Positions 1 through 55,025 of a DNA stretch of 64,000 bases are shown here, piece by piece. The notes under the pieces were generated by a model that had not been told where the DNA came from, ran no database searches, and worked only from the letters and a program-made list of their open reading frames with translations. A program made the translations under genes and the position numbers. Origin of the DNA: Carpediemonas membranifera BICM (Eukaryota > Protista > Fornicata); the NCBI GenBank assembly GCA_019828565.1, contig JAHDYR010000012.1, forward strand, positions 558,001-622,000, given 5' to 3'. Numbering within the stretch: the stretch's first letter is position 1; every line of letters starts with the position of its first letter.

Positions 1-1960
1 ACCTGGGTCGGCTTTGAGACCTTCCGCAAAGTTGCATGTCGACCCATCAACTGTATCACGTAGTTGATGTCGAGCCTGGCGCACTCCGCCCTAAAACTCT
101 CCAGCGCTCTACTCTGATCGCCATCGAAGGGACGCCGCACTGTCAATGCATTGCCCTTCTCGTTACGGTAAATGTGCGTGATCATCTTCTCATCAATGTT
201 GACAAGCATGGTCGGCTTCCCTGTCATCGAAGTCCACACTCTGATTGCTTCAACGCATGCCCATCTCGTCACTGTCCCGTCACTATTGACGTGCTCAGGA
301 AACAGCTCATCCAGAAGCTCTATCTCTGTCATCTTTGAGAATACGGCCATGGTCCTTGCGTGGGCGAGGAGCGTCTGGCGGTAAGCTGTCGCCTCATCCT
401 CAGCCTTGAGCTTCTGCGACAAGGGCAATTTGCGTCTGAACGCAGTAAATGTTCTCAGACCCGACATCATCATCAGGCAGTGAATGATGCAGTTCCCATA
501 ACCCAGGGTCGGATACGTAGGCCAACCTGAACTCGGAAGCCTTGTCGTGATGATCATGTCGAATGCCACAGTTCGGTTGTAGCGGGTTGGGTCAGACCTG
601 GCGTTGACCACTCTTCCGCTCTCCTCGGTTTCACCCTCCTCCTCTGCCCCACCCTCCTCGTCTGACTCGGCCTTCTCTTCCTCCTGCTCCTCCTCTGACT
701 TACTCTTGGCCGGAGAGTGCTGTGCGATGATATCCTTCATCTCAGGCGTAAAGTTGAGGTCTATGGGGTCTGCCAGGTCATTCGGAGCGGTTGCTTGTGC
801 AGACGCTGAGCAAACATCCTCGTCGTCGCCGGAGTTGCCGCCCTCGAGGTCGCCAAAGTGCAGCTCCTCCATCAACTCATCCGCCACTGGCTCCTCTTCC
901 TCCTCTGACTCGACCTCCTCCACTGGCTCCTCTTCCTCCTCTGACTCGACCTCCTCCACTGGCTCCTCTTCCTCCTCTGACTCCTCCTCCGAGTCCTCTG
1001 GCCTGGCCTTCTCGGGCGTGATGATGAGGGCCTTGCGCTTCACAGACATGGCTGCCTGCGCCTCGTCCGTATCGCGTCGGGGACAGGAAGTCCTGGAGAC
1101 TGTGCCAGACTGTGGCGGGATGGGGCTGCATGGGAGTGATGCATCCATGGACTTGTCAGCGTCATAGGCTGCCTCTCGCTCAGCCTGCTGCTGCAGAAGG
1201 CGTCGATGCAGCGTGATGACTTCCTCACTCTTTGCCGTCAAGCTCTTCCTCAACTGCTTGACTCTCTTCTTGTATCCTCGAACAATTTTGTGATAGTAAT
1301 CGATGATAGCGCCAGTACCTGGGGGGAGCAGGGGCGTACCTTCTCCCGCGGGGGTCTCCAACCATTCCAGGGCGATGATGTACTCTTCGAAGTACGAGCG
1401 GCAGGAGTGCTTCATGTAAGCAAGGTCTGCCTCCTTGCTGCGCACCCTGGCAACCATTGCTGTGACATGGTCGCGCACAAGCGCGTTGGTGGATGTCGCG
1501 TTGCGCCACGCCCGAACCTTGACACTCAGCGCCTCTTTTTCGATACGCGCGCCCTCATTCTCCTTGGCATACTCAGCCCTCTTGGAGTTCTTGAAGGCTG
1601 TGACAGCGGCCGACTCAAACGCCTTCATCTCCTTCTCCGTGAAGGTTGCCTCGATGTTCTCGTTCGAGGTCTTATCCTGCACCTGCTGAGACAGCAATGC
1701 CTCGAGTTCTGCCTTCTTCTCGCCCTGAATCTCGAAATATGAGCACAGGTGGTTAAAGTTGATCCCTATATAAACATTTGCACCAATTACGTACCGTTCT
1801 TGACGACTATATCGAAGATATCGTTCTCGTCGAGCAATTTGTCCCGAAGAACGGCACTCTTCGCCTTGTTTGTCTTCTTCTCCTTGAATTCGGTGATAAC
1901 GGCCTCAATCACATCATCTGAGGTGCTCTCGATCCACTCGTGAAGGAATTCGAACGTCAT
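1..1960 (-). CDS. OTU-like cysteine protease gene, copy 1 (coiled-coil N-terminus, acidic linker, C-terminal OTU-like domain; 3' end runs off window). Exon 1 1960-1795, 29-nt intron 1794-1766, exon 2 1765-<1
   Basis: Manual translation of the minus strand is open to base 1. Cys motif PTLGYGNCIIHCL and His motif QLMGRHAT. Removing intron GTACGT...TATAG joins ORF 1787..2059 in frame; the nearby TTT/TTC difference versus copy 2 is synonymous in that frame. Confidence 0.7.
884..985. repeat. About three 36-bp tandem repeats encoding the acidic linker (ESEEEEEPVEEV)
   Basis: tccactggctcctcttcctcctctgactcgacctcc repeated. Confidence 0.85.
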
Positions 1961-2620
1961 TCTTCTCTTCGTTATATCCCAATAATGGACATATAACAGA
2001 GATGAGAAAATTGCCAGTAACCGTAGGCAACGGGGTGTCGGAAACGTTATACCATACAAACGGGGGATATAATCGCTCCGAAAACATCCATTATGTGGAC
2101 TGAATGGCGATATAACGTATGGGGAGTGATCCGACGAGCTTTCGGGCGGTGCAGGCTAAGACACACCAAGTCTGTGGTGCTATAACGTACCTCGGGACGC
2201 ACTGTGGAGGCCCCTAGAGTACTCGGTCATGGCATGTCAGACCAAGGGTCCCTCAAATCTGGCCCCATTCAGGATGCTCCCCCTAAATGTTCCGTTGCAA
2301 GCGTCTGACGGAGGTTCTCTGGATACCGACCAAGATGGAGGTCACGTGAATCAACGGACGATAATTGCGGTATTCTGGCCATGCCTGGTACTTTCAAATC
2401 AGCTGTACTGATCTATGCTCCATTTATAGTTCATATCGTATGGTCCTGGTGGACTTATAGTTGTTGATGTTGTTTAGGGATAATTGTTGCTTTAATGATG
2501 CTCTGCGCCCGCATACTGATGTTTCTTAGTGTTGTACACATGCCTACTACGTTAAAGCCGCCAGTATTCTTTCTATTCTTAAGTTCGCCATTTCAATCTC
2601 GTTGCGAGCATAAAGTGCAC
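970..2620. repeat. Near-identical duplication of ~9722-11370
   Basis: Direct comparison, offset 8752; homology ends at cgagcataaagtgc. Confidence 0.95.
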
Positions 2621-3088
2621 ATTGTGAAAGGAAAGTGGGTGGTTATCTAATGGATACAGGGCAGGAAAAGGTACACGAATGCCGTCCTGAGGTTTGGCAT
2701 GGGATACTGATCTCATACGTCAAAAATGGGCGGTGGTATTCGAATTTCAGAATTTCGGCATGTCCGAATTCCGAGGCAAGCGGGAGGGTGTACAAAACCT
2801 GGCCTGGGTACCTATTAGAGCGAATAGAGAATGGCAGCACCATGGATTCGGTTTTCAGAATAATAATTGCATTTGGATCGCCATTTCAGAATTACTTCCA
2901 GCACCGGAGATTATCATTAAATCTGGGAGTGTAACAACACTTTTAAAAAATGAAAGGTCCCCATTCACCCACTCAGGCCCCAGATCACGTATCTGAGCTC
3001 AGTTTGGGTCAATTCCCAATACTTTAGAGTTTTGTATGGTCGAAATTCTGGAATAGCAATCCAAACTGAAGCAGCAAAAACTCATCCC

Positions 3089-4451
3089 ATGGAGGCTGTA
3101 GCGGCAATAGACGAAGATATCATGAAGCGTTGGTTGAAGAATGTTCCAACCAAATCGCGTACGAACTACAACAAGCTTCTGAAAGACGTTTTGGCCAGAA
3201 TTTGTCAGGAAACCGCCACAGATATCCAGAAGGGCATCGCGATTGTTCGTAGTGACGAGCTGGTAACCCATTTGCGCCGGTACCTCGCTGAGAAGCCTCT
3301 GGGGACGCAGAAGAAGATCGTTTCGGCTGTTCAGTCTTTCCGGAACTTCGACTTGCCACACCCCGCGAAGCCGTTGTCCTGGAAAGAGGAGGAAGAGGTG
3401 TCGCCTGCATCAGTTGAGAGTCTCCCCAGCCCGTATGGCGCCATTGCCATTCTGCTCAACCAGACGGGCTGGGAGTATTCGTATCTCCAAGGTAATCTCC
3501 CCGATGCGATAGACCTTACCTCGTGCCCGAGCTGGATGGGCTTTGGCACGCTCAAATCGGGATTCCCGCAGGCCAGTGCTGTATCGGAGGCGCTCAAGGT
3601 TCAGGGGTTGACGGTTCGCATGCTTCGCTTTGCGCAGCGGATCGACGTGTCCACCGATAGGATGCAGTCTATCGGCACGCTAGAGCGCCGCGGCAGACCG
3701 CGGGAGAAGCCTCAGAAGGTCATTAAGGACAAGCGCATCAGCCTGACCGATGAGCAGTTCAGGCACCAGTTGGCGTCCAGTCACTTAACGACCACGCGGC
3801 GCCCAACGATCCTCGATCTCAACCCGGAGATCCGAAGCTCTGCTGACCTGGTGCCGCCGACGCTCGATGACTGGCTTTACAACAAGCTCAGGATTAGGAT
3901 GGTCCAGCTCCACGACCAGCGTAAGCCCGAGGGGGGGCGACACGGGGGAGGGTGAGTCTGACGATGAGGCGCTGTTTGACGAGACAGCTGGCGAGGCAGA
4001 GATGCCGGAGACCGCAGTGGAGGGCGAGTTTGACGATGAGGCCGGGTTGGAGATGCTGGAAGGAGAGTGGGAGGATGAGGAGAGTTCAGACAGCGATGCC
4101 GAGGATAGCCTCGTCGACAACCTGTCATTTCTTCAGTCACAACAGGTTGAGTGTGATATGTCTGAGAGAGATACCGATGAGGGTGTCCGTAGCGGGGCCA
4201 ATGGAAGTGGGCTCGCTCCGCTCTATGACGCTATGAAGACCAGGGAGCCCAGCAGACGCATTCGCCTTCGCCGCTATCACGAGAGCGAGTCAGACTTGGG
4301 CAGCAGCAGCGACAGCGAGGACGGGATGCCGAAGCTGCCCGTTGAGGCCTTTGAGCACATCCGTGATGCCGGGATGACAACTGTGAGGCTGACGAGGGCC
4401 GAGTATGACGACGTGATGGAGAAGAGAGAGCAGGAAAAGCACCAGAAGTAA
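3089..4451 (+). pseudogene. Tyrosine-recombinase-like protein (catalytic residues degenerate) with AT-hook-like RGRPR and acidic tail, copy 1; +1 frameshift in G-run near 3931-3937
   Basis: ORFs 3032..3955 and 3867..4451 join into one protein colinear with 11828..13216; one extra G relative to that copy. Confidence 0.6.
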
Positions 4452-4581
4452 ATGGCGAGTGATTATCAACTGGATGCAGAGGCTGAGCGGCGTAACTAGC
4501 CTGCCAGGGTCCTTGTACACAGTATGTGTCTTGGCCAAGCTTGAATTCGTCGGTTGGCCGAAAAAGCATAAACTGCACGGG

Positions 4582-4610
4582 TCCAGGTCGGCAACCGTTG
4601 CCGACCTGGA
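4582..4610. other. Perfect 14-bp inverted repeat with 1-nt spacer (second copy 5678-5706)
   Basis: tccaggtcggcaac-c-gttgccgacctgga. Confidence 0.9.
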
Positions 4611-4892
4611 AGCCGCTCCTTGGGCGTTGAAGAACAGAAGAGAAAGCGATCAGCGATGCTTTTATGCAGTATTAAGCAGGTTGTGCGCGTCAAATGTCCG
4701 GTAATGCATTCGTCACCATCTAATCAACATCAACTCTTTTTCTCGGCAATGCAGAGGAGAATGCCCGTCACTAAAGGATGATTTGGTACTGAATAAACAT
4801 TATAATGAGACTGGAATGCTTGTGGACACGAAAACAGCAATGACAACATCGGGAGCAAGACAAGAAGATGATTCAGATTTATGAGGGAGAGG

Positions 4893-4945
4893 ACGCCAGG
4901 GATGACGGCGCCAGGGATGAGGCGCCAGGATGAGGGCGCCAGGAT
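4893..4945. repeat. Minisatellite (ggcgccagg(g)atga)n; inverted copy at 14477-14562
   Basis: Seen directly. Confidence 0.85.
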
Positions 4946-4951
4946 TACCTT

Positions 4952-5882
4952 AAGCTCTGCCGACCTGGTGGCTTTACAAAAAGCTCAGGATGAGGATGGT
5001 CCAGCTCCACGACCAGCGTAATCCCGATGGGGTCGACACGGGGGAGGGTGAGTCTGACGATGAGGCGCTGTTTGACGAGACAGCTGGCGAGGCAGAGATG
5101 CCGGAGACCGCAGTGGAGGGCGAGTTTGACGATGAGGCCGGGTTGGAGATGCTGGAAGGAGAGTGGGAGGATGAGGAGAGTTCAGACAGCGATGCCGAGG
5201 ATAGCCTCGTCGACAACCTGTCATTTCTTCAGTCACAACAGGTTGAGTGTGATATGTCTGAGAGAGATACCGATGAGGGTGTCCGTAGCGGGGCCAATGG
5301 AAGTGGGCTCGCTCCGCTCTATGACGCTATGAAGACCAGGGAGCCCAGCAGACGCATTCGCCTTCGCCGCTATCACGAGAGCGAGTCAGACTTGGGCAGC
5401 AGCAGCGACAGCGAGGACGGGATGCCGAAGCTGCCCGTTGAGGCCTTTGAGCACATCCGTGATGCCGGGATGACAACTGTGAGGCTGACGAGGGCCGAGT
5501 ATGACGACGTGATGGAGAAGAGAGAGCAGGAAAAGCACCAGAAGTAAATGGCGAGTGATTATCAACTGGATGCAGAGGCTGAGCGGCGTAACTAGCCTGC
5601 CAGGGTCCTTGTACACAGTATGTGTCTTGGCCAAGCTTGAATTCGTCGGTTGGCCGAAAAAGCATAAACTGCACGGGTCCAGGTCGGCAACCGTTGCCGA
5701 CCTGGAAGCCGCTCCTTGGGCGTTGAAGAACAGAAGAGAAAGCGATCAGCGATGCGTTTATGCAGTATTAAGCAGGTTGTGCGCGTCAAATGTCCGGTAA
5801 TGCATTCGTCACCATCTAATCAACATCAACTCTTTTTCTCGGCAATGCAGAGGAGAATGCCCGTCACTAAAGGATGATTTGG
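4952..5882 (+). repeat. Tandem duplicate of 3835-4786 (acidic C-terminal half of the YR-like gene plus 3' flank; ORF 4990..5547)
   Basis: Near-identical sequence, mostly at offset 1096. Confidence 0.95.
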
Positions 5883-6173
5883 AACTAACAGGCTTTAATA
5901 AGCATGTCAAGCCTGTGATCACGATAACAGCCTTCAATAACTACATCAAGGCAAATACATCAAGAAGATTGTTTAAAGAGACGGCGGGGAGCAAGATGCA
6001 GGGAGAGCGGCAGGGAAACGAAGGCATGGGGACAGGAGCCCGAGAAGAGCGCCTGGAGAACGGTGAGGAAGAACGGCGGGGAAGAGCAGCCGGGCGCATG
6101 GGTACACACATCTGTCATCATGTGGCATCAACATTGCCACAGTGGTCAACTCAATAACAAGCAATGTCTTCAT

Positions 6174-6875
6174 TTACTCACTGTTCTGGATCACCAATTC
6201 GTACGACGAGTAACAGTCGGGACAGAGCCGAATCTTGGGAATCGACTTGCCACAGATGACAATCTTCAGCAGCTCCATCTGTACGCAGTTGGCAGAGTTA
6301 CAGAACCAGTGCCCGCACTGCCTACAGTGCACGGCTGAGTCGTTGCGTCGGCATGCGTAACACTTCTTCTCATTGAGGCAATAGCTACACGTGTATTTCC
6401 AGCGACCCTTAGTGGACTCGGCCCAGTTCTTGTTCTTTCCAGTCTTAGGCCGGGGAGGGACACAGCGTGAGTTGTCGTGGAAGTTCACTTTGCATTCCTG
6501 GCAAGTCACAAACTTTGACGTCACGCGATTGTCGATCCAGTCCAGACTGTTGCAATGGCCGCAACAGAAACAAAGCAGCCTATTCTGAATGTCGAGAATC
6601 GAGAAAGAATCATCACCGACCTCAGACACATCGTCATCGTTGTCCCCTTGGCTGGCCAGACGTGCCTCCACGGTGGCGAGCCTCTGATCGACACTCATCG
6701 CGACACGGTGAACATCGTGCAGCACAATCGACTCGCGAGGCGCTTGAGGGGAAGCTGGAGAGGGAACCGAAGTGGGACCGGACGATGAGTGCAGGAAAGG
6801 CTCACTTTTCACGCAAAGCTCTTGCTTCACGTGTGTAAGGGCGGGGGTGGCAGGGTTGGGGATTTCAACTGTTCT
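6174..6875 (-). pseudogene. 3' part of PHD/zinc-finger gene interrupted by the 6876-16104 transposon
   Basis: CFCCGHC...CQECKVNFH...C...WKYTCSYC is PHD-like (C4HC3), followed by a second Cys cluster CYAC...CRQCGHWFCN...CPDC. Frame rejoins the segment ending at 16105 once element and TSD are removed. Confidence 0.7.
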
Positions 6876-6949
6876 CATACTGTCAATTCCTTGACTTCAA
6901 GTCAAGTTTTTGTGACTTAAAGTCAAGGCCAAAACTTGACTTTAAGTCA
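6876..6949 (+). repeat. Left TIR with three TGACTT-N-AAGTCA palindromes
   Basis: Reverse complement of 16031-16104. Confidence 0.95.
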
Positions 6950-7131
6950 AGACGTTTGAATTAATCAGAGGAACCAGGCTCTGTCAGTAAATAAGAATGG
7001 TATGGCTGGGTAGCAGTACTAGTTCTCTATTCACTGCATTGATGGCTAACTGTGGGCTAAGCTGTGACCTGAGTATGGGTGACTTCTTCTTGACGACGAG
7101 AGCCATTTTTTTCAAGTTCGACCACTTTGGC

Positions 7132-7214
7132 TCTGTCCCCTTCGCAGTTTTTTGCAGGATCTGATCTACACCAGTAGTGCTTGTGATCCAACAAAAATCT
7201 GCGAAGGGGACAGA
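7132..7214. other. Long fold-back (16-bp perfect outer stem)
   Basis: tctgtccccttcgcag ... ctgcgaaggggacaga, with inner ggatc/gatcc and ctac/gtag pairs. Confidence 0.8.
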
Positions 7215-8624
7215 ACAGATCTCGAGATTTTTAGCAAAAGACTCGGGCCGAGTCGAGAGGCGTTATTGATGAGCGCACAGCTCAGGGAATTTTTCTACGC
7301 TGCAACTAAAAACCAAGAGGCCGAGTAAACACAAGTATTACTACACGATGATGCCCAGACCGTCGTGTAAGGAGAACATTCTTGGGCGGTCAACGCGAAG
7401 AAAAAGTTAAAGTTATTGGAATTAAAAAGACGGCAATGTACTCGCCCTTGGCTGAAACCTCAGGCATAATGGTTTCAGGTGTGAACTCTTCCAATTGGGG
7501 GAGTTATTGTTATTGTTCAGTTTAAGGTCACGCCGCCTGCATGAAAAAAAATGGTAATGACGGAAGCAATGTCGGATATATCCAGAAATGACTGTGATAG
7601 AGCTCATAGCAAGACAGCATTCGAGATATTTGCCCATCTGAGCATGCTTTCGCTCATTCTAGATGGCATAAGCCTCTTTTCCCACAACTAATCAATATCA
7701 AGTCGGCTTTTTACTCAGTATCGCTCGCTCAGACATCTGAAACGTCCCCATTGGCAATATAACACTGCTGGAACAGTGAAGTGGCGAGCATAGAGTTCTA
7801 TTGATGACGAAAGGTTGCGACCGGCAAGCGCCTGGTTCATACGGCCATTTGGGGCGGTGCGAGAGCCAATCTCGTTAATGAAAGGTAAGATGATGCGCGC
7901 ATGAGTGTTTGTAGGGTCACTAACGACCTTAATGACGAGTTAGGACGTGTGTGGCAGGGCCGTGCGCTGCCGGAATACAAAGGGCAGATTCGCCCCGTTG
8001 ATTCCAGAAGCTCGCCGCTCTTCCACGCACGATAGTCAATACAGGGATAGATACACATCTGGACCTCTTTTATACAGCCAACCAGGCTCCGCATAAACTG
8101 CGCATTTCAGATGACGCCCGATGAAGAAAAACACACGAGCGACGCCGGTATCGCCGGCGAAACGTATAGCATTAACGATTGAAGGGAGAATTGGAGCTAG
8201 ACGTTGTTTATGGGATTCAACGAGCGCACTTCATTGATTCTCGCATTGATGGTGAATTAGAGCAGATGAAGCGCTGCACGGCAAGGATCAAGACATTTTG
8301 TTCATACTACATAGCAAATTACAACGAGTTTTCGATGTGAATAGATCTGTAAATAGAGAGAAACCTGTAGCAGCCGATAAACACTGTCAGTCAACAGCCC
8401 AACCGAAGACACGCCAAAACACAAGCACAAGTCAGTTTTACTCAGTTTGATTCCCGCAATTGCAGAGTAGTTCTCATGGCAGTCTTTGCAGAGATTGCAG
8501 AGATGATGGGGTGGGAGACACTCGATATTTGCATTTGTAGATGAGTTGGAGATAAATGTAGTCACTGACGCTAATCACCTTTTGCAATGACACGGATGAC
8601 GGAGTTCGTCATTCAATCTCGTTG

Positions 8625-8880
8625 CGAGCCATAAAGTGCACCAATAGTGGGAACCGACTTCCCACTATTTTCTCAGTGCCAATGAGCTATAGAGCTTTAT
8701 TGAGGATATAAGCTTGCATAATAACACATCAATAGCGTCTGACGGCCGCTATGGCCCATGATACTCATTAACAACATCAAACGAGTCAAAGGAACCACGA
8801 AACCACACAAGGAACGAGCTAGAAGAAACGATAGGAACTTTAATTGCATAAACAACATCAATACTGCCACCAGCTGTCCA
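8625..8880 (+). repeat. About 256-bp direct repeat (second copy 13357-13612) flanking the OTU + YR-like module; contains an 11-bp-stem hairpin (8643-8669)
   Basis: Near-identical copies; aatagtgggaa-ccgac-ttcccactatt. Confidence 0.92.
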
Positions 8881-8952
8881 GTCAGCGCCCCAAAGCCAAC
8901 AGCACCACGGCAGCACCACGACGCCACCGCAATTCATTCATTTACTACTGAC

Positions 8953-10712
8953 TCATTCCACAAAATAACAGTCATCCTCTGTGTTCTGTTGGGCAGACAG
9001 GTGCGATTCTGCCTTCCTCAGCTCAACAGGTGTTGCATGGTACACTTCCGCGTGTGCTGTGACGTCAGTTGGCGTGCCGGAGATATAAATGTAGTCATTG
9101 ACGCCAATCACGTTTGCAATGACACGGATGACGGACATGCTCGCATTAGTGTTTGTCAGGGTGATGTAACCCTTGTCTCTACCCTGGAAGAAGACGATTG
9201 TGCCGTCCTGGATGGATGCAATGGGCACGTTGTGAATCTGTGACCAGACCTGAATTGCGGTGTCCCGGCAGTATGGAAGACTGTCGTTCTTGCCACCCTT
9301 GCCTGTTGAACTGGCATGGCTGTAAAAGAGCTGATAGTCTGCCGGAAGTAGGTCGCGCTTCTGCATAATCCCTGCAGCAGCTTGAAGCTGCTCACGCCAA
9401 TCTGTTGTCGGTACGTCACGCTCGTTAGACACATGCCTGAGGCAGTGGCCAACACAGTCACCATCGCCTGGGGGGTTGTACGGCTTGAACTTCGACCGGA
9501 GGTGACGTGTGAACTCGTCCAGGCAGTCCTCTCTCTCCTCGGTCTGGACATCCTTGTCATCTGTCGGGGTACGGTCGTCACCTTCGTTCATCTCAGTTCC
9601 AGTCTCGCAGGTCACAGGTCTGGCCTTCTCGGGCTCAGTCTGGATACAGGCGTCGCATTTGGTCACGTCCTCCTCATCTGACTCACCCTTCTTCTCAACA
9701 GTCACCTCCTCCTCTATCTCCTCCTCCTCTGACTCCTCCTCCGAGTCCTCTGGCCTGGCCTTCTCGGGCGTGATGATGAGGGCCTTGCGCTTCACAGACA
9801 TGGAGGCCTCGGGCTCGTCCGTATCGCGTCGGGGACAGGAAGTCCTGGAGACTGTGCCAGACTGTGGCGGGATGGGGCTGCATGGGAGTGATGCATCCAT
9901 GGACTTGTCAGCGTCATAGGCTGCCTCTCGCTCAGCCTGCTGCTGCAGAAGGCGTCGATGCAGCGTGATGACTTCCTCACTCTTTGCCGTCAAGCTCTTC
10001 CTCAACTGCTTGACTCTCTTCTTGTATCCTCGAACAATTTTGTGATAGTAATCGATGATAGCGCCAGTACCTGGGGGGAGCAGGGGCGTACCTTCTCCCG
10101 CGGGGGTCTCCAACCATTCCAGGGCGATGATGTACTCTTCGAAGTACGAGCGGCAGGAGTGCTTCATGTAAGCAAGGTCTGCCTCCTTGCTGCGCACCCT
10201 GGCAACCATTGCTGTGACATGGTCGCGCACAAGCGCGTTGGTGGATGTCGCGTTGCGCCACGCCCGAACCTTGACACTCAGCGCCTCTTTTTCGATACGC
10301 GCGCCCTCATTCTCCTTGGCATACTCAGCCCTCTTGGAGTTCTTGAAGGCTGTGACAGCGGCCGACTCAAACGCCTTCATCTCCTTCTCCGTGAAGGTTG
10401 CCTCGATGATCTCGTTCGAGGTCTTATCCTGCACCTGCTGAGACAGCAATGCCTCGAGTTCTGCCTTCTTCTCGCCCTGAATCTCGAAATATGAGCACAG
10501 GTGGTTGAAGTTGATCCCTATATAAACATTTGCACCAATTACGTACCGTTCTTGACGACTATATCGAAGATATCGTTCTCGTCGAGCAATTTGTCCCGAA
10601 GAACGGCACTCTTCGCCTTGTTTGTCTTCTTCTCCTTGAATTCGGTGATAACGGCCTCAATCACATCATCTGAGGTGCTCTCGATCCACTCGTGAAGGAA
10701 TTCGAACGTCAT
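8953..10712 (-). CDS. OTU-like cysteine protease gene, copy 2. Exon 1 10712-10547, 29-nt intron 10546-10518, exon 2 10517-8953
   Basis: PPGDGDCVGHCL (OTU D-x-x-C) and EVYHATP; N-terminal half near-identical to copy 1. Confidence 0.72.
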
Positions 10713-11827
10713 TCTTCTCTTCGTTATATCCCAATAATGGACATATAACAGAGATGAGAAAATTGCCAGTAACCGTAGGCAACGGGGTGTCGGAAACGTT
10801 ATACCATACAAACGGGGGATATAATCGCTCCGAGAACACCCATTATGTGGACTGAATGGCGATATAACGTATGGGGAGTGATCCGGCGAGCTTTCGGGCG
10901 GTGCAGGCTAAGACACACCAAGTCTGTGGTGCTATAACGTACCTCGGGACGCACTGTGGAGGCCCCTAGAGTACTCGGTCATGGCATGTCAGACCAAGGG
11001 TCCCTCAAATCTGGCCCCATTCAGGATGCTCCCCCTAAATGTTCCGTTGCAAGCGTCTGACGGGCGTTCTCTGGATACCGACCAAGATGGAGGTCACGTG
11101 GATCAACGGACGATAATTGCGGTATTCTGGCCATGCCTGGTACTCTCAAATCATCTATACTGCTCTGTGGTTCATTTATTGTTCATATCGTATGGTCCTG
11201 ATGGACTTATGATGATTGATGTTGTTTAGGGATTATTGTTGCTTTAGTGATGCTCTGCGCCCGCTTACTGATGTTTCTTAGTGTTGTGCACATGCCTACT
11301 ACGTTAAAGCCGCCAGTATTCTTTCTATTCTTAAGTTCGCCATTTCAATCTCGTTGCGAGCATAAAGTGCGCGAATGCGCGGGTCAGTTCCCCCGTTTTC
11401 AGCGAAGCTGATGCGACAACACAGAGGCAAGCGAATCCTTACACCTCAGGCGTCGCCAGGAAGCCGTTGTCTGCCATGAACACTAAGCAGTGGTGAGATA
11501 AACGGAATTCAGACTTTCTGCCTGCACGACCTCAAATTTTGACTCCCCTCGGCACCGAAAAGGCACCTATATCCATGAATACCCTCTACAGTGATGTATC
11601 CACCCGATAAATGGATTTCAAATTTGTCGGGTCTCATGATAAATGGATTTCAGACTTTCGTACTGTTGGCCATCTGAGAATTTATGAACGACCTCTAGAA
11701 TATTTTGAAATGCAAGAACGTGCCTATGGCACTCTTTTGTACCCCTGAACACGCTTTGACCACTGTTTTGGGCATTTGGAGAGATTCGAATTTTTGTGCA
11801 TGACGAAAGTCTGAAATCCGTATATCG

Positions 11828-13216
11828 ATGGAAGGAAGCCCGCAGGAGATGGAAACAACCATGGAAGCTGTGAAGAATGCTTGGTTGTGCACCATCAGTA
11901 AGAAATCTTCCCGGAAAGCGGTCGCAAACAACCTTTCGCGGTTCGTTCAATTCGTACAACGTGAGCGAGGGAGTACCGAGGACGAAGCGCTCTCCGTGAT
12001 CCGGTCCGAGGAGGTTAGATCGCTTGTGCCCGGTTTTGCTGCATCATTGAACAAGGCAACCGCTGCTGTCACTCTCAGTGCCGTCAACTCATTCCGAAAC
12101 TCCGGCAGAGACAATGTCAAGCCGCTTGGGCAGTTTGAGCCTGTCGCATCGGAAGCTATTGTCCGACTAGTCTTCCCCTACAATGCGCTGGCTCTTATCA
12201 TCAGCCACACGGGCATGACTGCCACATCAGCCCGCGATATTGATGTGAGCGAGCTCCAGATTCCCCCGGAACTCGCTGACTGGTTGCTATTCACCGGGGC
12301 ACCATCCGCGATGTCCGCTGTGATGCCTAGCACCTTCTCGCAGGCTCTCAAGTCGGTCGGGCTGAGTGTTAACCAGCTTCGCTATGCGCCCACTGTGCAT
12401 GTCGATCTCAATCAGCTCAAGAAGCGGGTGATTGAGACACAAAGACGGACTGGCAGGCCCAGGGATCCGATCAAGGTTCGTAAGGTCATTAAGGACAAGC
12501 GCATCAGCCTGACCGATGAGCAGTTCAGGCATCAGTTGGCGTCCAGTCACTTAACGACCACGCGGCGCCCAACGATCCTCGATCTCAACCCGGAGATCCG
12601 AAGCTCTGCTGACCTGGTGCCGCCGACGCTCGATGACTGGCTTTACAACAAGCTCAGGATTAGGATGGTCCAGCTCCACGACCAGCGTAAGCCCGAGGGG
12701 GGCGACACGGGGGAGGGTGAGTCTGACGATGAGGCGCTGTTTGACGAGACAGCTGGCGAGGCAGAGATGCCGGAGACCGCAGTGGAGGGCGAGTTTGACG
12801 ATGAGGCCGGGTTGGAGATGCTGGAAGGAGAGTGGGAGGATGAGGAGAGTTCAGACAGCGATGCCGAGGATAGCCTCGTCGATAACCTGTCATTTCTTCA
12901 GTCACAACAGGTTGAGTGTGATATGTCTGAGAGAGATACCGATGAGGGTGTCCGTAGCGGGGCCAATGGAAGTGGGCTCGCTCCGCTCTATGACGCTATG
13001 AAGACCAGGGAGCCCAGCAGACGCATTCGCCTTCGCTGCTATCACGAGAGCGAGTCAGACTTGGGCAGCAGCAGCGACAGCGAGGACGGGATGCCGAAGC
13101 TGCCCATTGAAGCCTTTGAGCACATCCGTGATGCCGGGATGACAACTGTGAGGCTGACGAGGGCCGAGTATGACGACCTGATGGAGAAGAGAGAGCAGGA
13201 AAAGCATCAGAAGTAA
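11828..13216 (+). CDS. Tyrosine-recombinase-like protein, apparently catalytically dead, with AT-hook-like GRPR and acidic tail, copy 2 (intact, 462 aa)
   Basis: Core-binding-like LNKATAAVTLSAVNSFRN; box I-like ALIISHTGMTATSA (no Arg); GLSVNQLRYA (H-x-LR-like); LASSHLTTTRRPT (Pro at the Tyr position). Confidence 0.55.
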   Translation: MEGSPQEMETTMEAVKNAWLCTISKKSSRKAVANNLSRFVQFVQRERGSTEDEALSVIRSEEVRSLVPGFAASLNKATAAVTLSAVNSFRNSGRDNVKPLGQFEPVASEAIVRLVFPYNALALIISHTGMTATSARDIDVSELQIPPELADWLLFTGAPSAMSAVMPSTFSQALKSVGLSVNQLRYAPTVHVDLNQLKKRVIETQRRTGRPRDPIKVRKVIKDKRISLTDEQFRHQLASSHLTTTRRPTILDLNPEIRSSADLVPPTLDDWLYNKLRIRMVQLHDQRKPEGGDTGEGESDDEALFDETAGEAEMPETAVEGEFDDEAGLEMLEGEWEDEESSDSDAEDSLVDNLSFLQSQQVECDMSERDTDEGVRSGANGSGLAPLYDAMKTREPSRRIRLRCYHESESDLGSSSDSEDGMPKLPIEAFEHIRDAGMTTVRLTRAEYDDLMEKREQEKHQK

Positions 13217-13356
13217 ATGAACGAAGTAAATATGTCGTGGGAATGACTCAAACACTGACTAAGCCATCGACTTGGCGCAGCTGACCAGACAGTCAGATAT
13301 ACATTCATTTATTCCTGTCTCGCTCTCTTGCCTGTCGGAGACCAGCGGATTGAGAT

Positions 13357-13612
13357 CGAGCCATAAAGTGCACCAATAGTGGGAACCGACTTCCCACTAT
13401 TTTCTCAGTGCCAATGAGCTATAGAGCTTTATTGAGGATATAAGCTTGCATAATAACACATCAATAGCGTCTGACGGCCGCTATGGCCCATGATACTCAT
13501 TAACAACATCAAACGAGTCAAAGGAACCACGAAACCACACAAGGAACGAGCTAGAAGAAACAATAGGAACTTTAATTGCATAAACAACATCAATACTGCC
13601 ACCAACTGTCCA
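13357..13612 (+). repeat. Second copy of the 256-bp direct repeat
   Basis: Matches 8625-8880. Confidence 0.92.
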
Positions 13613-13642
13613 TTGGATTCCAGAAATAGCCATTGTCTCTTC

Positions 13643-14111
13643 TGGAACGTCCGGGAGAGAGCACAGGGGAGAGAGCCCCAGGAGAAGAGAGCCCGGGGGA
13701 ACGTCCGGGAGAAGAGCCCGGGGAGAGAGCCCGGGAGAAGAGAGCCCGGGGGAACGTCCGGGAGAGAGCCCGGGAGAGAGCACGGGGGAACGTCCGGGAG
13801 AGAGCCCGGGAGAGAGCACGGGGGAACGTCCGGGAGAGAGCCCGGGGGAGAGAGCCCGGGGGAAGTGAGAGCCCGGGGAACGTCCAAGAGAGAGCACGGG
13901 GAGAGAGCCCCGGGAGAAGAGAGCCCGGGGGAACGTCCGGGAGAGAGCCCGGGAGAGAGCACGGGGGAACGTCCGGGAGAGAGCCCGGGGGAGAGAGCCC
14001 CAGGAGAAGAGAGCCCGGGGGAACGTCCGGGAGAGAGCCCGGGGGAGAGAGCCCCAGGAGAAGAGAGCCCGGGGGAACGTCCGGGAGAGAGCCCGGGAGA
14101 GAGCACGGGGG
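13643..14111. repeat. Purine-rich compound minisatellite (gggagagagccc / ggaacgtcc units)
   Basis: Seen directly. Confidence 0.95.
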
Positions 14112-14476
14112 CAATTCAGGGCCCAGAAAACACCAGCACCAGCGCAAGTAAGCTATTTTATTGCAAAACGCTCTACTTGCGCTGGTACTTCAGCGTTTTC
14201 GGGGCCCTTTGCCCATCTTTCGTTGTCTGAATTTTTTCGTGCAGAATTCAGACGAGTGTCGCCTGGCAGAGGCTGAGCAGCGGAGCTTAGTCCCTGTGGC
14301 ACCACTCGTCTGGCCCAGCTCCCGGGTATGCTCCAGAAAATTCAGGTGCAGATTTGGGAGCAGAAATGTCGACGAACCCCGAAAACACCATAACCGGCAC
14401 CAGTGAGCGCATCTTCGTTGATAAAGCTCATTGGTGCTGGTAATATGGCGTTTTCGGGGTTCAAATACTGTACTCC

Positions 14477-14562
14477 TCATCCCTGGCGCCTCATCCCTGG
14501 CGCCCTCATCCTGGCGCCCTCATCCTGGCGCATCATCCCTGGCGCCCTCATCCTGGCGCCCT
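14477..14562. repeat. Minisatellite (tcatcc(c)tggcgcc)n
   Basis: Seen directly; inverse of 4893-4945. Confidence 0.9.
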
Positions 14563-16030
14563 CAACAGCAAGTTCCATCATCCACATCACTCCCTAACAA
14601 CATCAACGACTCGCCTACCACCGACAGCGATGGCGAAGTCTGCGTTGATGTCGCCAGTGCCAACCCAGCTGGCATACGCGTCGCAATGAATGTAAATGTT
14701 TACGTGTTCTCTTCGTCCCTTCTATCGTCCAGGATCTGCTGTCAGACGTCCATGAGCGATCATCCCTTATCCTGCGGAGCAGCCCAACATCAGCTCCAGC
14801 GGTTCAGAGCATGCGTACAATGCTTCCGGGGCATGTAGAGTGATCGTGTAGGAGCTTTATGACGATTCCAGGACGTGGAGTTCAGGAATATGTCCGTATT
14901 ACCCAGCAAATTTCATCATCTCCATTATTGCTGCAGTATTCAAAGTAAACGCGAACAACACGATTTATCTCCATTCATTGGCGCCTCGAGGAGCGCTTCA
15001 GTGCCTCTAGAGCGTGCTTCAGCAGCATTTCGATCGAGATTAAAAATCACCCGAATTCTAGCTCTGTTCTGGCCGCTGCAGGCACCGCTGGGCGCAATAG
15101 AGCTCGGAGCGGCGTTGTCTGCCAAAAAGAGCATATTGCTCCCGGTGAAAATTGAACCCACGATCTGGAGGCTGTGTACAAAGTCTCTTCCCTCTATGCC
15201 ACGACTTATGGGAAATCCGCCCTTATTAAGCTTCCTACAGGGAATATAGGCCATTTTGGAGGTATGAGCGACTGGGAGGGGGGGAATGGGGGACATTTAC
15301 GGTATGGCTGGACTCTACTCGGGCAGACTATTATAACGAGGCTCAGATCAGACCTCTACGGCCGCTATACGAGGAGAAACGTGCCAGTAAGGGCACTAGC
15401 GGCCTATGGCCGCAGCAGCGCCCAGCCAAGCTCAGCTATAGGGTCACCTGAGGCCCCGAATGACGTGCTGATCAGGTCGACTCCCATCTATTGACTTGGT
15501 AATTGCAGAGGCCGTCTGAACGCGATGTCCTAATAACCGACTTGGTCGGAGCGGTTCGGCGATGACTCCGCTGTATTCCGCGCCTTCTTCTGATGCCGAA
15601 ACATGCAGTCCTTTAGAGTCAACGCGCGTCCTGTCCGTCAGGCATGAAGGGCATTCAGCAGAGGCATTGCTGCGGTCTGCAGGCCGCCCCAGCGCTTCAG
15701 GATGGCCAACTGGATGATCTGGACCCATGTCTATCAAATCCATTTTGATCACATCAAACGTGTGTCAAATCCGGCAAATCGATTTTGCGATAAAAAAAGG
15801 GGCAGAGGGGAGGAAGCGACCCATAAGTCGTACCTATGGACCATTTCCTCCCCCCTGCCCGCTTTTTGAGTCTCAACTCTCAATTCCAATTTGTCCCTAT
15901 GTTACTTTTTTCTAGCAGGATTTAAAGTTTGATACTGCGCATGCGTATTGCTTAGGTATAGCCAAGTACTACCATACCACTTTGAAGATCCAGCTCCGTC
16001 TCATCGTCGAGTTCATTTTTTCTTGCAAAA

Positions 16031-16104
16031 TGACTTAAAGTCAAGTTTTGTCCTTGACTTTAAGTCACAAAAACTTGACTTGAAGTCAAGGAATTGACAG
16101 TATG
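16031..16104 (-). repeat. Right TIR of the 9.2-kb element
   Basis: Reverse complement of 6876-6949. Confidence 0.95.
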
Positions 16105-16686
16105 CTGCACTTGCCCACAAATCTCTCCGGGTCATTGATATCGGGCACACAGAGATTAAAGTCTCGGGAGTCGAGATTATCTGGCACAGGAATATTGAGT
16201 CTCGACAGGACGGATCTGATCGCGCTGGTTAGCTCCGAACGGACTGGGCGAGGAGCTCTTGCAGAGAGCATGGACAACCTTGGGTTTCCCGTCAGATATG
16301 GCCACAGTCACCCCCATCGTCTCAGCCCAATCTCGGACGTTCTTCGCAACAACCCTTCCCATCGAGACGCCAGGTTTCAACTTCAGCTCATCGAGGAAGT
16401 CCGGTGTTTCGGAGCACGGCTGAAGAAACGACACGATGATGTGGTTGAACGCATTTCCGAGCTTTTTGATGGACAGGCCAGTTGGGTCTGAGTCAAAGAC
16501 GTCAAACGCAAACGTGAAGAAGGCCTTAAGCATGCCCATCATGAGAATTGACCGGCAAGTACTCAAAGCGGTTGTGTTCCACTTCGTCATCGGTCTCGAT
16601 CTCTTAGAAACAGCCTTAACTGCATGATCGTCCGCCATGTTCTCATTTACGGCCGCGCGCTTCGTTTCTAGCTCCGTTTCTGTCAT
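16105..16686 (-). pseudogene. 5' part of the interrupted PHD-finger gene (frameshift or small intron near 16180-16300)
   Basis: Overlapping ORFs 16177..16686 and 16086..16277; the latter joins 6873 in frame. Confidence 0.6.
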
Positions 16687-16783
16687 TCCAGAGTAGATTT
16701 TCTACTAAAAATTGGCATTGTTACAACCAATCATTAACATTAATAGAGAAGGAGAATAAAGACTCACCAGCCCGCGGCCAATC

Positions 16784-19399
16784 GTGACTCAGGTTCGCAT
16801 CAGACGTCGACAGAGACGAGTTAAACATGAGGCTGGGCAATTGTCTTCTGAGCTAATCCTTAACCTTTCAAAGAGGATGCTAATACCGAAGTGGACGCTA
16901 TTACACGGCACTATTTATGCTCCTCAAGAGGATACTGGCATCAACACCATTCTATGCAGCGTGTACCTTTCCATTGACTCAGATAACGTCAGCACACATC
17001 GGTTTCGTGTTTCCAAAGCTCCCCAACGCCGTGAGTTCGTCCAGGTTGTTCAAGAGTTGCTCAGTGCAGGATATATATGTCGCCAGGATGTTTCAAAGCA
17101 GCTGTACCCCTCTCCGACTGCCACATCTATCGCTGCGGAGAAGAGGAATCACACGACTTACCCAAGAGCCTACGTGAAGCATACATCCGCAGTTGACACT
17201 CTCGCAGCCGAGAATGAGTGTCTACGGAAGCGTCTGGCCGACACGGAGCGCCTGATTCAACTAACGAACCAGCTCAAGTCCATCACAAACGGATACAATG
17301 CCGTTAACGACGAGATCCGCATAATGAACTCTCTTGCAGGTAGGCTTAACCTTGATATTGTGCGGATATCTCCTGTTACCTCGAAGATCAAGTCTCTCGC
17401 GTGTAATATCCAGAATATGGAGGAGATAGAATCACTTCTCCAATCTGACACCGCTTGGAGGAGATTTATCCGCAGTCACGTTCCCGCCAACATTCAGCAC
17501 AGGGTAACGGCGAGAAGGTCTGATCAGGCCAATCAGGAATATGAGCTCGACCTCATCACCCATGTCGAAGCTCCTCTTGATGTTGTACGATCATCTATTC
17601 AGGGCGACTCGGCCCATGCAGAGCACGTTGCAGGAAAGATCGTCGTCTTCTATGACTCAGAGCAGGACCGTGAGACTCACTATAGCATCATGAAAGAGCA
17701 AGGCCTCACCCCTCGGATGCAGACGAGTGCAAGATATACCCATGTATATCATGCATCATTTGATATCATGGAGTATTATCGCCAAGCGGTTGCATTCCCC
17801 GTATCGCTGGAGACGTCACGATCCGGGCGCAAGAGTGCAGCTCGGACATTAAGACGACAGAGTCATTCCGCTGAGACGGGGACGATCCCACTCGTGTTAG
17901 AGGTGTGGGTCGATGCGTGGAGAGGGCTGACAACCGCTGTTAAGATTCGTTTCCTCGACGACTCCCACAAAGTCTTTCCGTCTGGTGCGACTCCTCCTTT
18001 CCGGATTCTTGAATACAACGGCCCAGAAAGTCTCATCACTGAGCATTTTGCCTTCATTGAACAGTCCATCGAGAGCACACACCGCGAGGTGCTGGAAGTC
18101 AGGAACACGGGTCTCCTCTGCCGAGTAACGCGTGTCTTTATTATCGCTGACCATCCAGCCATGTCCAAGGTTTGCGGGGCACTCATTGGAGGCAATTACC
18201 CCTCGCCATTCAGTCCCGTTCATTCGAAGAACAAGGGCTGGAGTCCCTTTGGTCGCACCCCGCGCTGCACCTTGGCAGATATCCTGCTGGCGAAGCATAA
18301 GTCACAGTTCGACACTATTATGGACAGAGAGGCCAAATGGGGATCCTTCTATAACCATCAGAAGAAGTGCATCGCTCCCACTTTGTTTGAGACGTCGACT
18401 GCGTCGCTGCCCAGAGACTGCGTCTTCTTATTCCCTCCAATCATGCATGTCAGTCATGACTTTGTGTCGTTGATTCATGCCATGTGCCGCATGTTCAAGC
18501 CAGAGCCAATTGACCCAGAGAGCGACCCTCGTCAAATTAAGGAGGTGAAGGCAAGGAACGCGATGCTAGCGAATCTGGCGTCGTTTGAGCCACCCAGCCG
18601 TACGACGGGCTGCAACGAGCAAGTCAAGGGGAGAAAGATGATAGCATCGATTGGACTTAAGCTGCATCGTGCGTTCCCGCCACCCGTGCAGTCATTATTC
18701 ATACTCGCTGCATACCTCCAGGAGCACTACTATTCCCACGAGGATGTAACTGAGAACATGGTCGTGTGGCATCGCTTGACAGCACTTCTCGTGCACCTCT
18801 TCTCTGTGACCATGTGTCTTAGCACATCTAACACGGTTGCCCCAGACATTCCGATCCGTCAACCATCTGCGACTCCCGATACGGCGCCGTGTGTTGATAC
18901 ACTTCACGGATTGGCGCGTATTGCCGCGCTGCCGGAGATACAAGCGAAGACTCGGGCCTCCTTTGGTCGAGTCATCGAAGAGTGCTTTGAACGTGATTTC
19001 ATTGGGAATCAGGAGAGTCGAGTGCGATTGCGTCAGAACCAGACGGTTCTTGAGAGCACTATTCTGAAGGAGCAGGTTGAGTTGCTGTTCAGATGCCTTC
19101 GTGGAGTGATTTCCTACGGAAGACGCGAAACAGATGTCCCACCCCAGTCACCCCTGAAACTTATGCGCATTCATAAGTGTTGTAAGGATGCCAATTGGTG
19201 GCTTCGTATCCGGAGTGTGCATTCTAAGACGCTGACAGCGACTGAGTGCCAAAAGCTGCACATGGTGTTTACGAAGGAAGTCAACGGCCTATGGCGCACT
19301 GTCTTGTCGAAAGCAGACTGTAGCTTTGACTCAGACTGGCTGGATGTTCCCATTCACGAGCAGGGACACACTCTTGATGTTTGCATATGCAAGAGATAG
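16784..19399 (+). CDS. DDE transposase of the Transib/RAG1/CMC group (start uncertain; first in-frame ATG 16877)
   Basis: EVWVD (D1); FIIADHPAMSKVCG...YPSPFS (D2, degenerate CxxC); FPPIMH; TLHGLARIAALPEIQAKTRASFGRVIEECFE, resembling the RAG1/Transib H...PEI...G...E-x-x-E segment. Confidence 0.7.
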   Translation: MTQVRIRRRQRRVKHEAGQLSSELILNLSKRMLIPKWTLLHGTIYAPQEDTGINTILCSVYLSIDSDNVSTHRFRVSKAPQRREFVQVVQELLSAGYICRQDVSKQLYPSPTATSIAAEKRNHTTYPRAYVKHTSAVDTLAAENECLRKRLADTERLIQLTNQLKSITNGYNAVNDEIRIMNSLAGRLNLDIVRISPVTSKIKSLACNIQNMEEIESLLQSDTAWRRFIRSHVPANIQHRVTARRSDQANQEYELDLITHVEAPLDVVRSSIQGDSAHAEHVAGKIVVFYDSEQDRETHYSIMKEQGLTPRMQTSARYTHVYHASFDIMEYYRQAVAFPVSLETSRSGRKSAARTLRRQSHSAETGTIPLVLEVWVDAWRGLTTAVKIRFLDDSHKVFPSGATPPFRILEYNGPESLITEHFAFIEQSIESTHREVLEVRNTGLLCRVTRVFIIADHPAMSKVCGALIGGNYPSPFSPVHSKNKGWSPFGRTPRCTLADILLAKHKSQFDTIMDREAKWGSFYNHQKKCIAPTLFETSTASLPRDCVFLFPPIMHVSHDFVSLIHAMCRMFKPEPIDPESDPRQIKEVKARNAMLANLASFEPPSRTTGCNEQVKGRKMIASIGLKLHRAFPPPVQSLFILAAYLQEHYYSHEDVTENMVVWHRLTALLVHLFSVTMCLSTSNTVAPDIPIRQPSATPDTAPCVDTLHGLARIAALPEIQAKTRASFGRVIEECFERDFIGNQESRVRLRQNQTVLESTILKEQVELLFRCLRGVISYGRRETDVPPQSPLKLMRIHKCCKDANWWLRIRSVHSKTLTATECQKLHMVFTKEVNGLWRTVLSKADCSFDSDWLDVPIHEQGHTLDVCICKR

Positions 19400-20545
19400 T
19401 AAAGATCGGATTTAGTCTCGCGGTCAATCTCACGTGGCCCAGAGCAGCGTGCTCCTGGAATCAACAGGGCATAAAACACCCTGCGTATTCCGGTAGCACA
19501 CCGTTCTGACTCACGTCCGTCTCTGGTTGTCGTACAGGTCTATTTACGTGTTTGGCGATGGCGCTCCTGACATAAGCTTAATGGCGTGTCGTGGCTGTCA
19601 GTATGCTGCAAATGTCTCAGCGAGAAAGGAGTCACCAATCGCGTTCAGCTTACTTGTTTCTCGCCTGATACTGCTCGTAATATCGTTCAAGCGTGAATCT
19701 ATGAAGTAATGGGACTGAATGGCCTCTATTGCGTCAATTTCCTGCGTAATCGTTGTTGAATGGTCTAGAATAGATGTTGCAGCTACTTCCAGCTCATGTT
19801 GCATGCTAAATGCTGTGTTTTGGACAATTGGTCGTGTTCAGGCAGAATTTTTTCGTGCAAAGTGCAGGCTAATACCCGTCCTTAAACTGTGGGATCAGCC
19901 GCTGGGTAAATATACTGAGAAAAAACCATATAGCTGAGTTCACTGTCTTGTGCTGAATACGGTGGCGCCATTTATTTCTCTGAATCGTCAAGTTTTGTCA
20001 GCGTTGACCGCGCAAGACCGGTCGTCCTTACGCGATGTCACCAACACCATCATATTCTTCCCCCTGACATTCTACGTGTCCCCCAGTCTGGATTCGTGGT
20101 CTGCAATATTCACAGAGATATTCGCCTTCTCTTTCGCGAATTTGACTCTGATCAAGTCGAAAAACGAAAAAACGACCATATCTCGAAATCTACACGTTGG
20201 AATCGGTACCAGAGTGATTTTGCGCATATGTACATCCCGTCAGCAGTCTGCAAAATCACTCTCGTACCGATTCCAACGTGTCAATTTTGAGATATTGCTC
20301 GTTTCATCCTTTTGCCTTAACCTGCGTCGCAAAGAAGTCGAAATCAGTGGTTAGACCGCACTGGACCTCTTGCAGGCTCTCTGCATACGCGCTTTAGTAT
20401 GCAATGAAGGTATTCATTTTCCCGTAAATTGTTTAAATTCAATGAATACTTCATTTTCGGTCCGGAAGAAATAGATAATCTAGGGTTTTTAGGCCCTAGA
20501 TTATCTAGAAAAAATCGTAGATTATCTGCCGACTTTCACAGTATG

Positions 20546-26711: not shown

Positions 26712-26831
26712 GTTGGTCTCCAGTATGCGCTCCTCTCGCCATTCAGTATGCAAAGCATCAATTAACAACATCATATGCTGTTTTCTAGAGGTTGTGGCTA
26801 ACGAAAATGCGCAAATCAAGCAGAGCATGAT

Positions 26832-33600: not shown

Positions 33601-34167
33601 CGTAACCACGGAGGAGACGACAGGGAGAGACAGGACAACACGGGAACGCAGATGAGAGGCTCGTTCAGCGGGAACACCTGGGCCGGTAGAGGCTCAGAGG
33701 GAGGCATGGACAACAGCAAGGATCACTCTTCCTCCACGACGCTCAAGCGCAAGGAGGGCAGCACGAGTAGGATCATGGACTCGGACAGCGGAAAGAGAAG
33801 CAGGCACGAAGAGGACATGGACTGGGAGTCTGGAAGCAGACAGGCAACCGGCATGGACTCGGAGAAGCTGCGGCTCCGAAAGCAGTTGGCAGAGGCGCAA
33901 CAAGAGATCTCAGCGCTCAAGTCTGCCCGACTCATGCAAGAGCAAGGCCACGGAAGGTTGGTGCTCTCCGGCGTCGCGACTAAGCCCAGCAAGGAGAAGC
34001 CCACGATCCCCCGGCACAAGCACAAGAAGGCTAAGAAGGCCAAGCAGATCTCACCCATGGACCTGATGACCCAGTTCATCACGGTAATGCAGAGTCTACA
34101 AGGACAGCAAGTGAGTCAGGCCGAGGACAGCTGCAGCGGCAGTGGGGAGTCCACGGAGGAGGAGTAA
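30664..34167 (+). CDS. LINE ORF1 copy 1 with Maelstrom-like DEDDh nuclease domain (~31921-32600); two indels at homopolymers (~32898, ~33213)
   Basis: Colinear with the intact ORF 38114..40954. Confidence 0.8.
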
Positions 34168-34499
34168 GGACATGGTAAAGCAGTATTCTTTCAAGGAACA
34201 AGCAACATTTTCTTTATAATTCACAAGCCCTGGCTCCCACCCAGGGCCCGGCATTAGCTGAAATGCACTGCCGGTAGGCTGTAGCGGCAGCCAAAGGGGG
34301 GGTCACGTCATATCGTCCCCCTCCTAAGTACCCTGCCCGAAGAATGGAAGGTCACCAGGTGGTAACAAGGTTGGCCTGACAAGGGTCACCGAGACCGGCA
34401 TCTAGGCCCCTTGTTAGGACAAGGATAGCAGGAGAGGAGCGGGAAGCTGGGGCTCCCAAATTCTGGGAATTCGCAGGATAAGGAAACAGGACAAAGGCA

Positions 34500-38063: not shown

Positions 38064-38113
38064 GGTCGTTCATACTGGTATCAGGGGCTCATGGAGACGA
38101 GGCCGTAGAAGGC

Positions 38114-40954: not shown

Positions 40955-41285
40955 GGACATGGTAAAGCAGTATTCTTTCAAGGAACAAGCAACATTTTCT
41001 TTATAATTCACAAGCCCTGGCTCCCACCCAGGGCCCGGCATTAGCTGAAATGCACTGCCGGTAGGCTGTAGCGGCAGCCAAAGGGGGGTCACGTCATATC
41101 GTCCCCCTCCTAAGTACCCTGCCCGAAGAATGGAAGGTCACCAGGTGGTAACAAGGTTGGCCTGACAAGGGTCACCGAGACCGGCATCTAGGCCCCTTGT
41201 TAGGACAAGGATAGCAGGAGAGGAGCGGGAAGCTGGGGCTCCCAAATTCTGGGAATTCGCAGGATAAGGAAACAGGACAAAGGCA

Positions 41286-54980: not shown

Positions 54981-55025
54981 GCCTTCACTAAACTTCCGGC
55001 GGTGCATTTTATGTACATGAGACTC

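Follow-up and report, generated by a model that had tools for sequence, protein, structure and literature searches.

The elements described here appear, as judged from sequence and from protein models, to make up a CMCT-like lineage that has not been described, has degenerate zinc sites and lies within or beside the CMCT clade. Representatives of this lineage in Carpediemonas membranifera are 9-28 kb long and recently active, and three transposase genes of its family A with different flanks show 0 differences. The explanation that covers the observations best, and which we regard as quite probable, is that of RAG1-fold cut-and-paste elements with family-specific TIRs, 2-bp TSDs and exchanged cargo, the left end of one of them having been replaced by recombination. 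The stretch of DNA that was analysed (64 kb, G000:C1:558001-622000) is referred to as the window; the genome searched comprises 24,237,836 bases in 69 contigs. The features of the window are listed in Table 1. No paper describing these elements was found, and the string "transpos" is absent from the main text of the genome paper (PMC8516963).

Extent and ends of the family-A element

The family-A composite element is 27,570 bp long (G000:C1:550976-578545), and the window holds its right 20.5 kb (positions 1..20545, + strand); about 16.7 kb is left once the nested family-B element and an extra left piece are subtracted. As stated in the preliminary description, which was made from the letters of the window, CATACTGT points inward at 6876 (+), 16104 (-) and 20545 (-), with CT outside each. 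The window contains six matches to CATACTGT against 1.27 expected, a count reached by none of 100 shuffles. The remaining three matches (4519 and 5615, both within one tandem duplication, and 42577) are not demonstrated as ends. At 4519-4526 and 5615-5622 (-) the match directly follows the tail of the tyrosine-recombinase-like (YR-like) gene in both tandem copies and could be a relic end of another family; this type of end had no match in the other loci retrieved in this analysis.

The three ends were originally ascribed to one family, which proved incorrect: those at 6876 and 16104 differ in TIR type from that at 20545, having only the first 8 nt in common with it, and delimit a family-B element nested in A. 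That the 20545 end has no left partner within the 64-kb window, and that the element exceeds 20 kb, was anticipated correctly. The predicted left junction (CCCCACCT followed by CATACTGTGAAAG) was found 7,025 nt upstream of the window, at G000:C1:550976 (locus L051). The composite sits in a Gypsy integrase gene: the left flank of L051 matches window positions 26712-27665 and the right flank matches 27663-28271, and the target CT is present once in the intact Gypsy copy and twice at the occupied site.

The upstream end starts as 20545-19866 in inverted orientation, and a deletion separates this from 17040-16105, to which the B right TIR is joined; it is an inverted right-end piece and no true left TIR. 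In canonical A left ends the A TIR precedes 1 kb of sequence with 97% identity to the B right subterminal region, and in C1 the B TIR occupies the exact place of the A left TIR. The interior of the A left end starts 1,124 nt past the B TIR in C1, the same as in canonical copies, and window position 1 lies at an offset of 5,405 in C1 vs 5,402 in the C32 copy (for C1:552642-558000 the mapping is by position-only searches). The likeliest cause of the replacement, as far as can be deduced from these alignments, is recombination between the inverted 1-kb repeats.

Table 1. Features of the element and of its right flank in window coordinates.
Feature	Position	Strand	Remark
OTU-like cargo gene of A	3..1904	-	frame of 634 codons that continues beyond the window start
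1.67-kb module (OTU gene, 5' part with the region upstream)	949..2618		98% identical to 9704-11370 in B
Tyrosine-recombinase-like gene of A	3032..4451	+	acidic tail
3' part of the PHD and FYVE-like finger partner gene of A	6174..6875	-	cut by the B insertion
Left TSD of the B insertion	6874..6875	+	CT
Family-B element	6876..16104	+	9,229 bp; non-autonomous deletion derivative nested in A
B left TIR	6876..6949	+	74 nt; 99% complementary to 16031-16104
Last codons of B's own transposase	8502..8545	+	by comparison with L026
OTU-fold gene of B (putative protease)	8953..10449	-	G-D-G-D-C motif
Tyrosine-recombinase-like protein of B	11828..13216	+	462 aa; acidic tail
B right subterminal kilobase	14991..16028		97% identical to the interior of canonical A left TIRs (L054, L056-L060)
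B right TIR	16031..16104	-	followed by TSD CT at 16105-16106
5' part of the PHD partner gene of A	16105..16686	-	oriented head-to-head to the transposase gene; a single extra base near 16254
Family-A transposase	16877..19399	+	840 aa (probable start); RAG1/Transib fold
Subterminal inverted repeat inside the A right end	20178..20295		46-nt arms; inverted-repeat search
A right TIR	20472..20545	-	74 nt
TSD and continuation of the interrupted Gypsy integrase	20546..21154	+	TSD CT at 20546-20547; identical to intact copy 27663-28271

The nested family-B element

The insertion site of B is empty, with a single CT, in 12 other A copies. The full B arrangement is found in L026, where the B transposase is 39% identical to that of A. 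Relative to L026, the window copy has lost about 3.7 kb, including the PHD and transposase genes of B, just upstream of the remaining transposase codons. The element also contains a GA-rich tandem array on a 12-nt unit (13644-14111) and a short repeat (14475-14564) which has an inverted copy at 4886-4945 and is seemingly what is fused into the C-terminus of P0004.

Families, copy number and target sites

Genome-wide, 37 A, 32 B and 22 C ends were counted, family C being a third TIR type found mostly as pairs of 14-17 kb (loci including L029/L030) with a different upstream gene. In the three families and in L061 the termini are CATACTG..CAGTATG. A pairs of canonical appearance are 20.5-30.5 kb long, and miniature derivatives measure 0.75 kb. 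One 743-bp miniature element (L047, G000:C13:68039-68781) has two right ends and flanks that are an inverted repeat of each other over 489 nt; it is either a palindromic rearrangement or an assembly feature. A further region, G000:C26:1032686-1071066, holds three right ends and three transposases, inverted and in tandem, without an A-type left end.

The 2-bp TSD proposed at the outset was observed in five A pairs (CT, TC, CA, AA and GC), in five B pairs (CT, AG, AG, AT and AT) and in L061, and the remaining four B pairs are compatible with it. It did not hold throughout: a TSD is absent in four A pairs examined (C6, C68, C55 and C13), and TSDs are inconsistent among the family-C pairs tested, four of seven fitting no 2-bp TSD and the C67 pair having none at any length from 2 to 11 bp. 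The suggestion that the target is specifically CT is refuted by the mixture of duplicated dinucleotides. A CT or AG flank is present at 6 of the 30 A ends and at 9 of the 32 B ends, and a mild CT/AG bias is possible.

The transposase

The 871-codon frame noted previously 1.1 kb inside the 20545 end occupies 16784-19399, i.e. 1,146 nt inside it. Comparison with homologues suggests that the true start is M32 at 16877, which would give a protein of 840 aa. The presumed catalytic residues are D346 (codon at 17912), D425 (18149) and E705 (18989), all three of which are invariant in every alignment row covering them. In the AlphaFold model (pLDDT 83.5) D346 and D425 lie at the ends of β-strands and E705 at the start of a helix. 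Structure comparison matched this RNase H-fold model to RAG1 (Foldseek E 2e-8; Z 14.7, rmsd 5.8, 435 residues aligned) over residues about 122-748, and further matches were HzTransib (Z 13.8) and the P-element transposase (Z 12.4). The likeness is one of fold, the identity to RAG1 and HzTransib being only 7-11%; the RAG1/Transib-like DDE enzyme named in the preliminary description is thus borne out at this level. No structures of EnSpm, Mirage, Chapaev or Plavaka were among the PDB fold matches, so RAG1 may rank at the top only as a representative of what has been solved.

Searches by sequence returned little. No match to the transposase was obtained in Pfam, even at E 10, or in a sequence search of the PDB. 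With a profile, 29 hits were obtained among 1.84 billion proteins, and the 20 that were looked up are from C. membranifera or from unnamed contigs; one weak metagenomic profile hit aligns over the core with a probability of 99%. The word-index search with the 16-row alignment gave two close hits only, and the Atlas look-alikes include DUF1280 and Transposase_21 clusters.

Conservation of the CMCT motifs is uneven. The MH motif (M523-H524) is present in 15 of 16 rows, and an ExxE surrounds the last catalytic Glu. The C(2)C motif after the second Asp, which we take from its spacing in the RAG1 layout to fall at 443/446, reads S/S in the window protein; the first position is Cys in 6 of 14 rows, in none of them together with a second Cys. 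As for the H(3-4)H motif before the Glu, a single His stands at column 679 in 8 of 16 rows (Leu in the window protein), and the second His is found in none. Distant members keep one Cys and one His at the most, the window protein neither. A C-terminal HxC...CxC motif is nearly invariant and may bind zinc.

Between A and a 60%-identical subfamily, dN is 0.31 for the transposase, with dS saturated, and 0.43 for the PHD part, with dS of 1.7. Since dN is well below dS, both appear to be under purifying selection.

Cargo genes and exchange of modules

The types of cargo recognized initially (PHD, OTU and YR-like) were recovered by profile hits to PHD and FYVE-like fingers, by the OTU fold and by Atlas integrase features, respectively. 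The PHD partner gene occurs in A and B, in the 60% subfamily and next to the transposases of distant relatives, down to an identity of 22-28%. Its profile matches PHD structures (E 5e-4 to 5e-3) and FYVE (2e-3), with no Pfam PHD hit; in the PHD-like C4HC3 finger the Cys preceding the His is not conserved. The gene is broken in the window, and among the 12 other A copies examined an intact one (426 aa) is found in L006 only.

By its fold, the B gene at 8953..10449 is an OTU-type gene and a putative protease. The top 24 rows of the wide search with its model are OTU-domain proteins (best Z 8.4, for a model with pLDDT of only 62.9). The fold was tested on this B paralogue, and the catalytic Cys is invariant. 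The A gene has the stalk and the acidic region in common with the B gene and a different OTU domain. The 1.67-kb module is present in many copies genome-wide. Altogether, the one N-terminal stalk is combined with three OTU domains, with an identity of 29-35% to the first of them.

The YR-like protein of B resembles integrase clusters in Atlas language-model features (0.94-0.95); by eye it lacks the Box I Arg as well as the catalytic Tyr, and it looks catalytically dead. The A gene has a frameshift near 3950, and its 3' part is 99% identical to the B paralogue and has a tandem duplicate at 4969-5886. Hence there are two YR-like domains, 49% identical, with one 99% identical tail. Comparison of the copies shows that modules are exchanged between the families.

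In another assembly, GCA_002919055.1, a Gypsy pol gene contains a complete element of 11,629 bp; its ends read CATACTG, its TIRs measure about 71 nt and its TSD is GC. It carries a 22%-identical transposase, a PHD partner and an OTU-like gene, as well as genes that are SET-like and caspase-like by eye. At further loci there are SET (Pfam E 9e-4), GNAT and kinase genes as well; a protein kinase gene (L017:4517-5488, Pfam E 9e-19) adjoins a transposase of the 60%-identical subfamily. Three contigs of GCA_002919055.1 (L063-L065) stop at the same base about 490 nt past the transposase, which is probably the end region of the element.

The cargo may act on chromatin and ubiquitin at the element and keep it expressed or mobile. 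VANDALs are Mutator-like elements, and Starships move with an active tyrosine recombinase. Starships likewise carry accessory genes of their own; here mobility would be due to a DDE enzyme, the YR-like protein looking inactive. Chromatin-directed or accessory genes of the element's own are also described for the anti-silencing VANDAL/VANC transposons of Arabidopsis (PMC10398659). Fungal transposons carrying TET are a precedent for chromatin-protecting cargo (PMC12730594).

Relation to the CMCT clade

Mirage has a TSD of 2 bp. The CMCT clade (EnSpm/CACTA, Mirage, Chapaev, Transib, Plavaka, ESTA as well as Lanisha) is characterized by CA..TG ends, TSDs of 2-5 bp and the C(2)C and H(3-4)H motifs (PMC12730594), and an [L/M]H motif has been described as well (PMC4079192). 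The present elements resemble it in their termini and TSD length, in a DDE transposase of RAG1-like fold with MH after the second Asp, and in extra genes, which some members of the clade possess. They differ in the degenerate or absent C(2)C and H(3-4)H, in the C-terminal HxC...CxC, in the absence of sequence hits to library families and in a length of 9-28 kb with PHD, OTU and YR-like cargo. With CA..TG ends, a 2-bp TSD and the fold but neither C(2)C nor H(3-4)H, the enzyme would be CMCT/Transib-like while lacking two motifs that mark membership. The separation from the named lineages was made by published descriptions (PMC12730594, PMC4079192), the quick tree comprising this family alone; the distinctness of the lineage, suggested earlier, agrees with the blank Pfam and PDB sequence searches and with the degenerate zinc motifs.

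Among the individual lineages, Chapaev has CAC..GTG termini and TSDs of 3-4 bp (PMC4079192) in contrast to the CAT ends and 2 bp found here. ESTA of fungi is RAG1-like by HHpred and also has a 2-bp TSD, which is TA-specific, whereas the dinucleotides are mixed here. PlavakaB of fungi is alike in CAT-starting ends and TSDs of 2-3 bp, but its termini are CATCA..TGATG (PMC12730594) and those of the present elements begin with CATAC. Both PlavakaB and ESTA keep the zinc motifs, and some members carry an epigenetic enzyme (TET/JBP), a cargo different from that described here. Transib, RAG1 and RAGL provide the best fold match and are alike in the ExxE at the last catalytic Glu and in a heptamer-like terminus, but their canonical TSD is 5 bp, and the present elements have neither ZnC2/ZnH2 ligands nor a RAG2-like kelch gene.

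Alternative interpretations

It is possible, albeit doubtful, that the elements constitute a new superfamily sister to CMCT, defined by loss of the ZnC2/ZnH2 site, a dedicated PHD partner and exchangeable chromatin/ubiquitin enzymes, and shuffled by homologous recombination, the host lacking NHEJ. That they are instead a very divergent member of a named CMCT lineage with 2-bp TSDs (Mirage, animal/fungal EnSpm, PlavakaB or ESTA), masked by the long branches of metamonads, seems unlikely. The CA..TG ends with the 2-bp TSD, the PlavakaB termini and the DUF1280 and Transposase_21 look-alikes would suit such a placement, but Pfam is blank at the most permissive threshold, the few profile hits are Carpediemonas or unnamed as far as looked up, and the two zinc motifs common to all named lineages are degenerate. 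A true element of the Transib/RAG1 line, with a changed TSD and a PHD partner serving as a transposase cofactor like the PHD finger of RAG2, is very unlikely. RAG1 and HzTransib are indeed the best folds, CATACTG and the Transib heptamer CACAATG agree at 5 of 7 positions, the length of the TSD is variable within Transib (bioRxiv 10.64898/2026.08.26.747230) and the PHD gene travels with transposases of as little as 22-28% identity. However, sequence identity is low and the P-element transposase scores nearly as high, neither a zinc site nor a kelch domain is present, the heptamer match is weak (p of about 0.1 by our own estimate) and most A copies that moved recently have a broken PHD gene. We keep to the reading of a CMCT-like lineage with degenerate zinc sites, which would be a new, deeply diverging metamonad branch of the enzyme family from which RAG1 arose. 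Its enzyme apparently works without the zinc site of all named relatives, and this makes the need for that site testable.

The structure and content of the window copy may be read differently, too. An assembly error as the source of the odd left end is highly improbable. The region is repeat-rich, with many 1-nt indels between copies, yet the left piece differs from the right end in the window at three positions, two of which are TIR alleles present in other copies; this argues against simple misassembly. Moreover, this piece has a deletion junction of its own, and the Gypsy target runs continuously across both ends. As for the cargo, passive capture of DNA in the Pack-type manner, with no role for the element, would account for the frameshifts, truncations and tandem duplications of the window copy, but is rather improbable: distant families and different assemblies retain the catalytic Cys motifs and the zinc ligands, dN values are far lower than dS, and L061-L066 again contain these types of gene.

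Proposed mechanism

By analogy with RAG/Transib chemistry, a transposase dimer would pair the TIRs, the element would be excised, probably via hairpins on the flanks, and insertion would proceed with a 2-nt stagger. Metamonads lack NHEJ, with neither Ku nor DNA-PKcs (PMC8516963), so the donor break would presumably be repaired by homologous recombination, often from another copy. Such repair may be the reason for the module swapping, the hybrid ends and the mismatched flanks. In the present copy a right-end piece would have replaced the left TIR via the 1-kb sequence common, in inverted orientation, to the A-left and B-right subterminal regions. The cargo is envisaged to read histone marks, remove ubiquitin and bind DNA at the element. 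The hybrid ends and swapped modules may illustrate the course that the evolution of cut-and-paste elements takes if recombination repairs their breaks, and large, recently mobile elements with chromatin and ubiquitin enzymes are a candidate anti-silencing system.

Remainder of the window

The element is followed at 20546-30128 by Gypsy/chromovirus-type retrotransposons nested one within another (21153-22366 repeats 25498-26711), with integrase and chromodomain hits. Tandem, strongly AT-skewed repeats (4.3 kb at 99.9% and 1.7 kb at 99%) with long ORFs occupy 31272-45640 and are probably a retroelement array. At 46000-64000 the GC content rises up to 0.62-0.68, and the long ORFs of this part (up to 1663 aa) are probably host genes.
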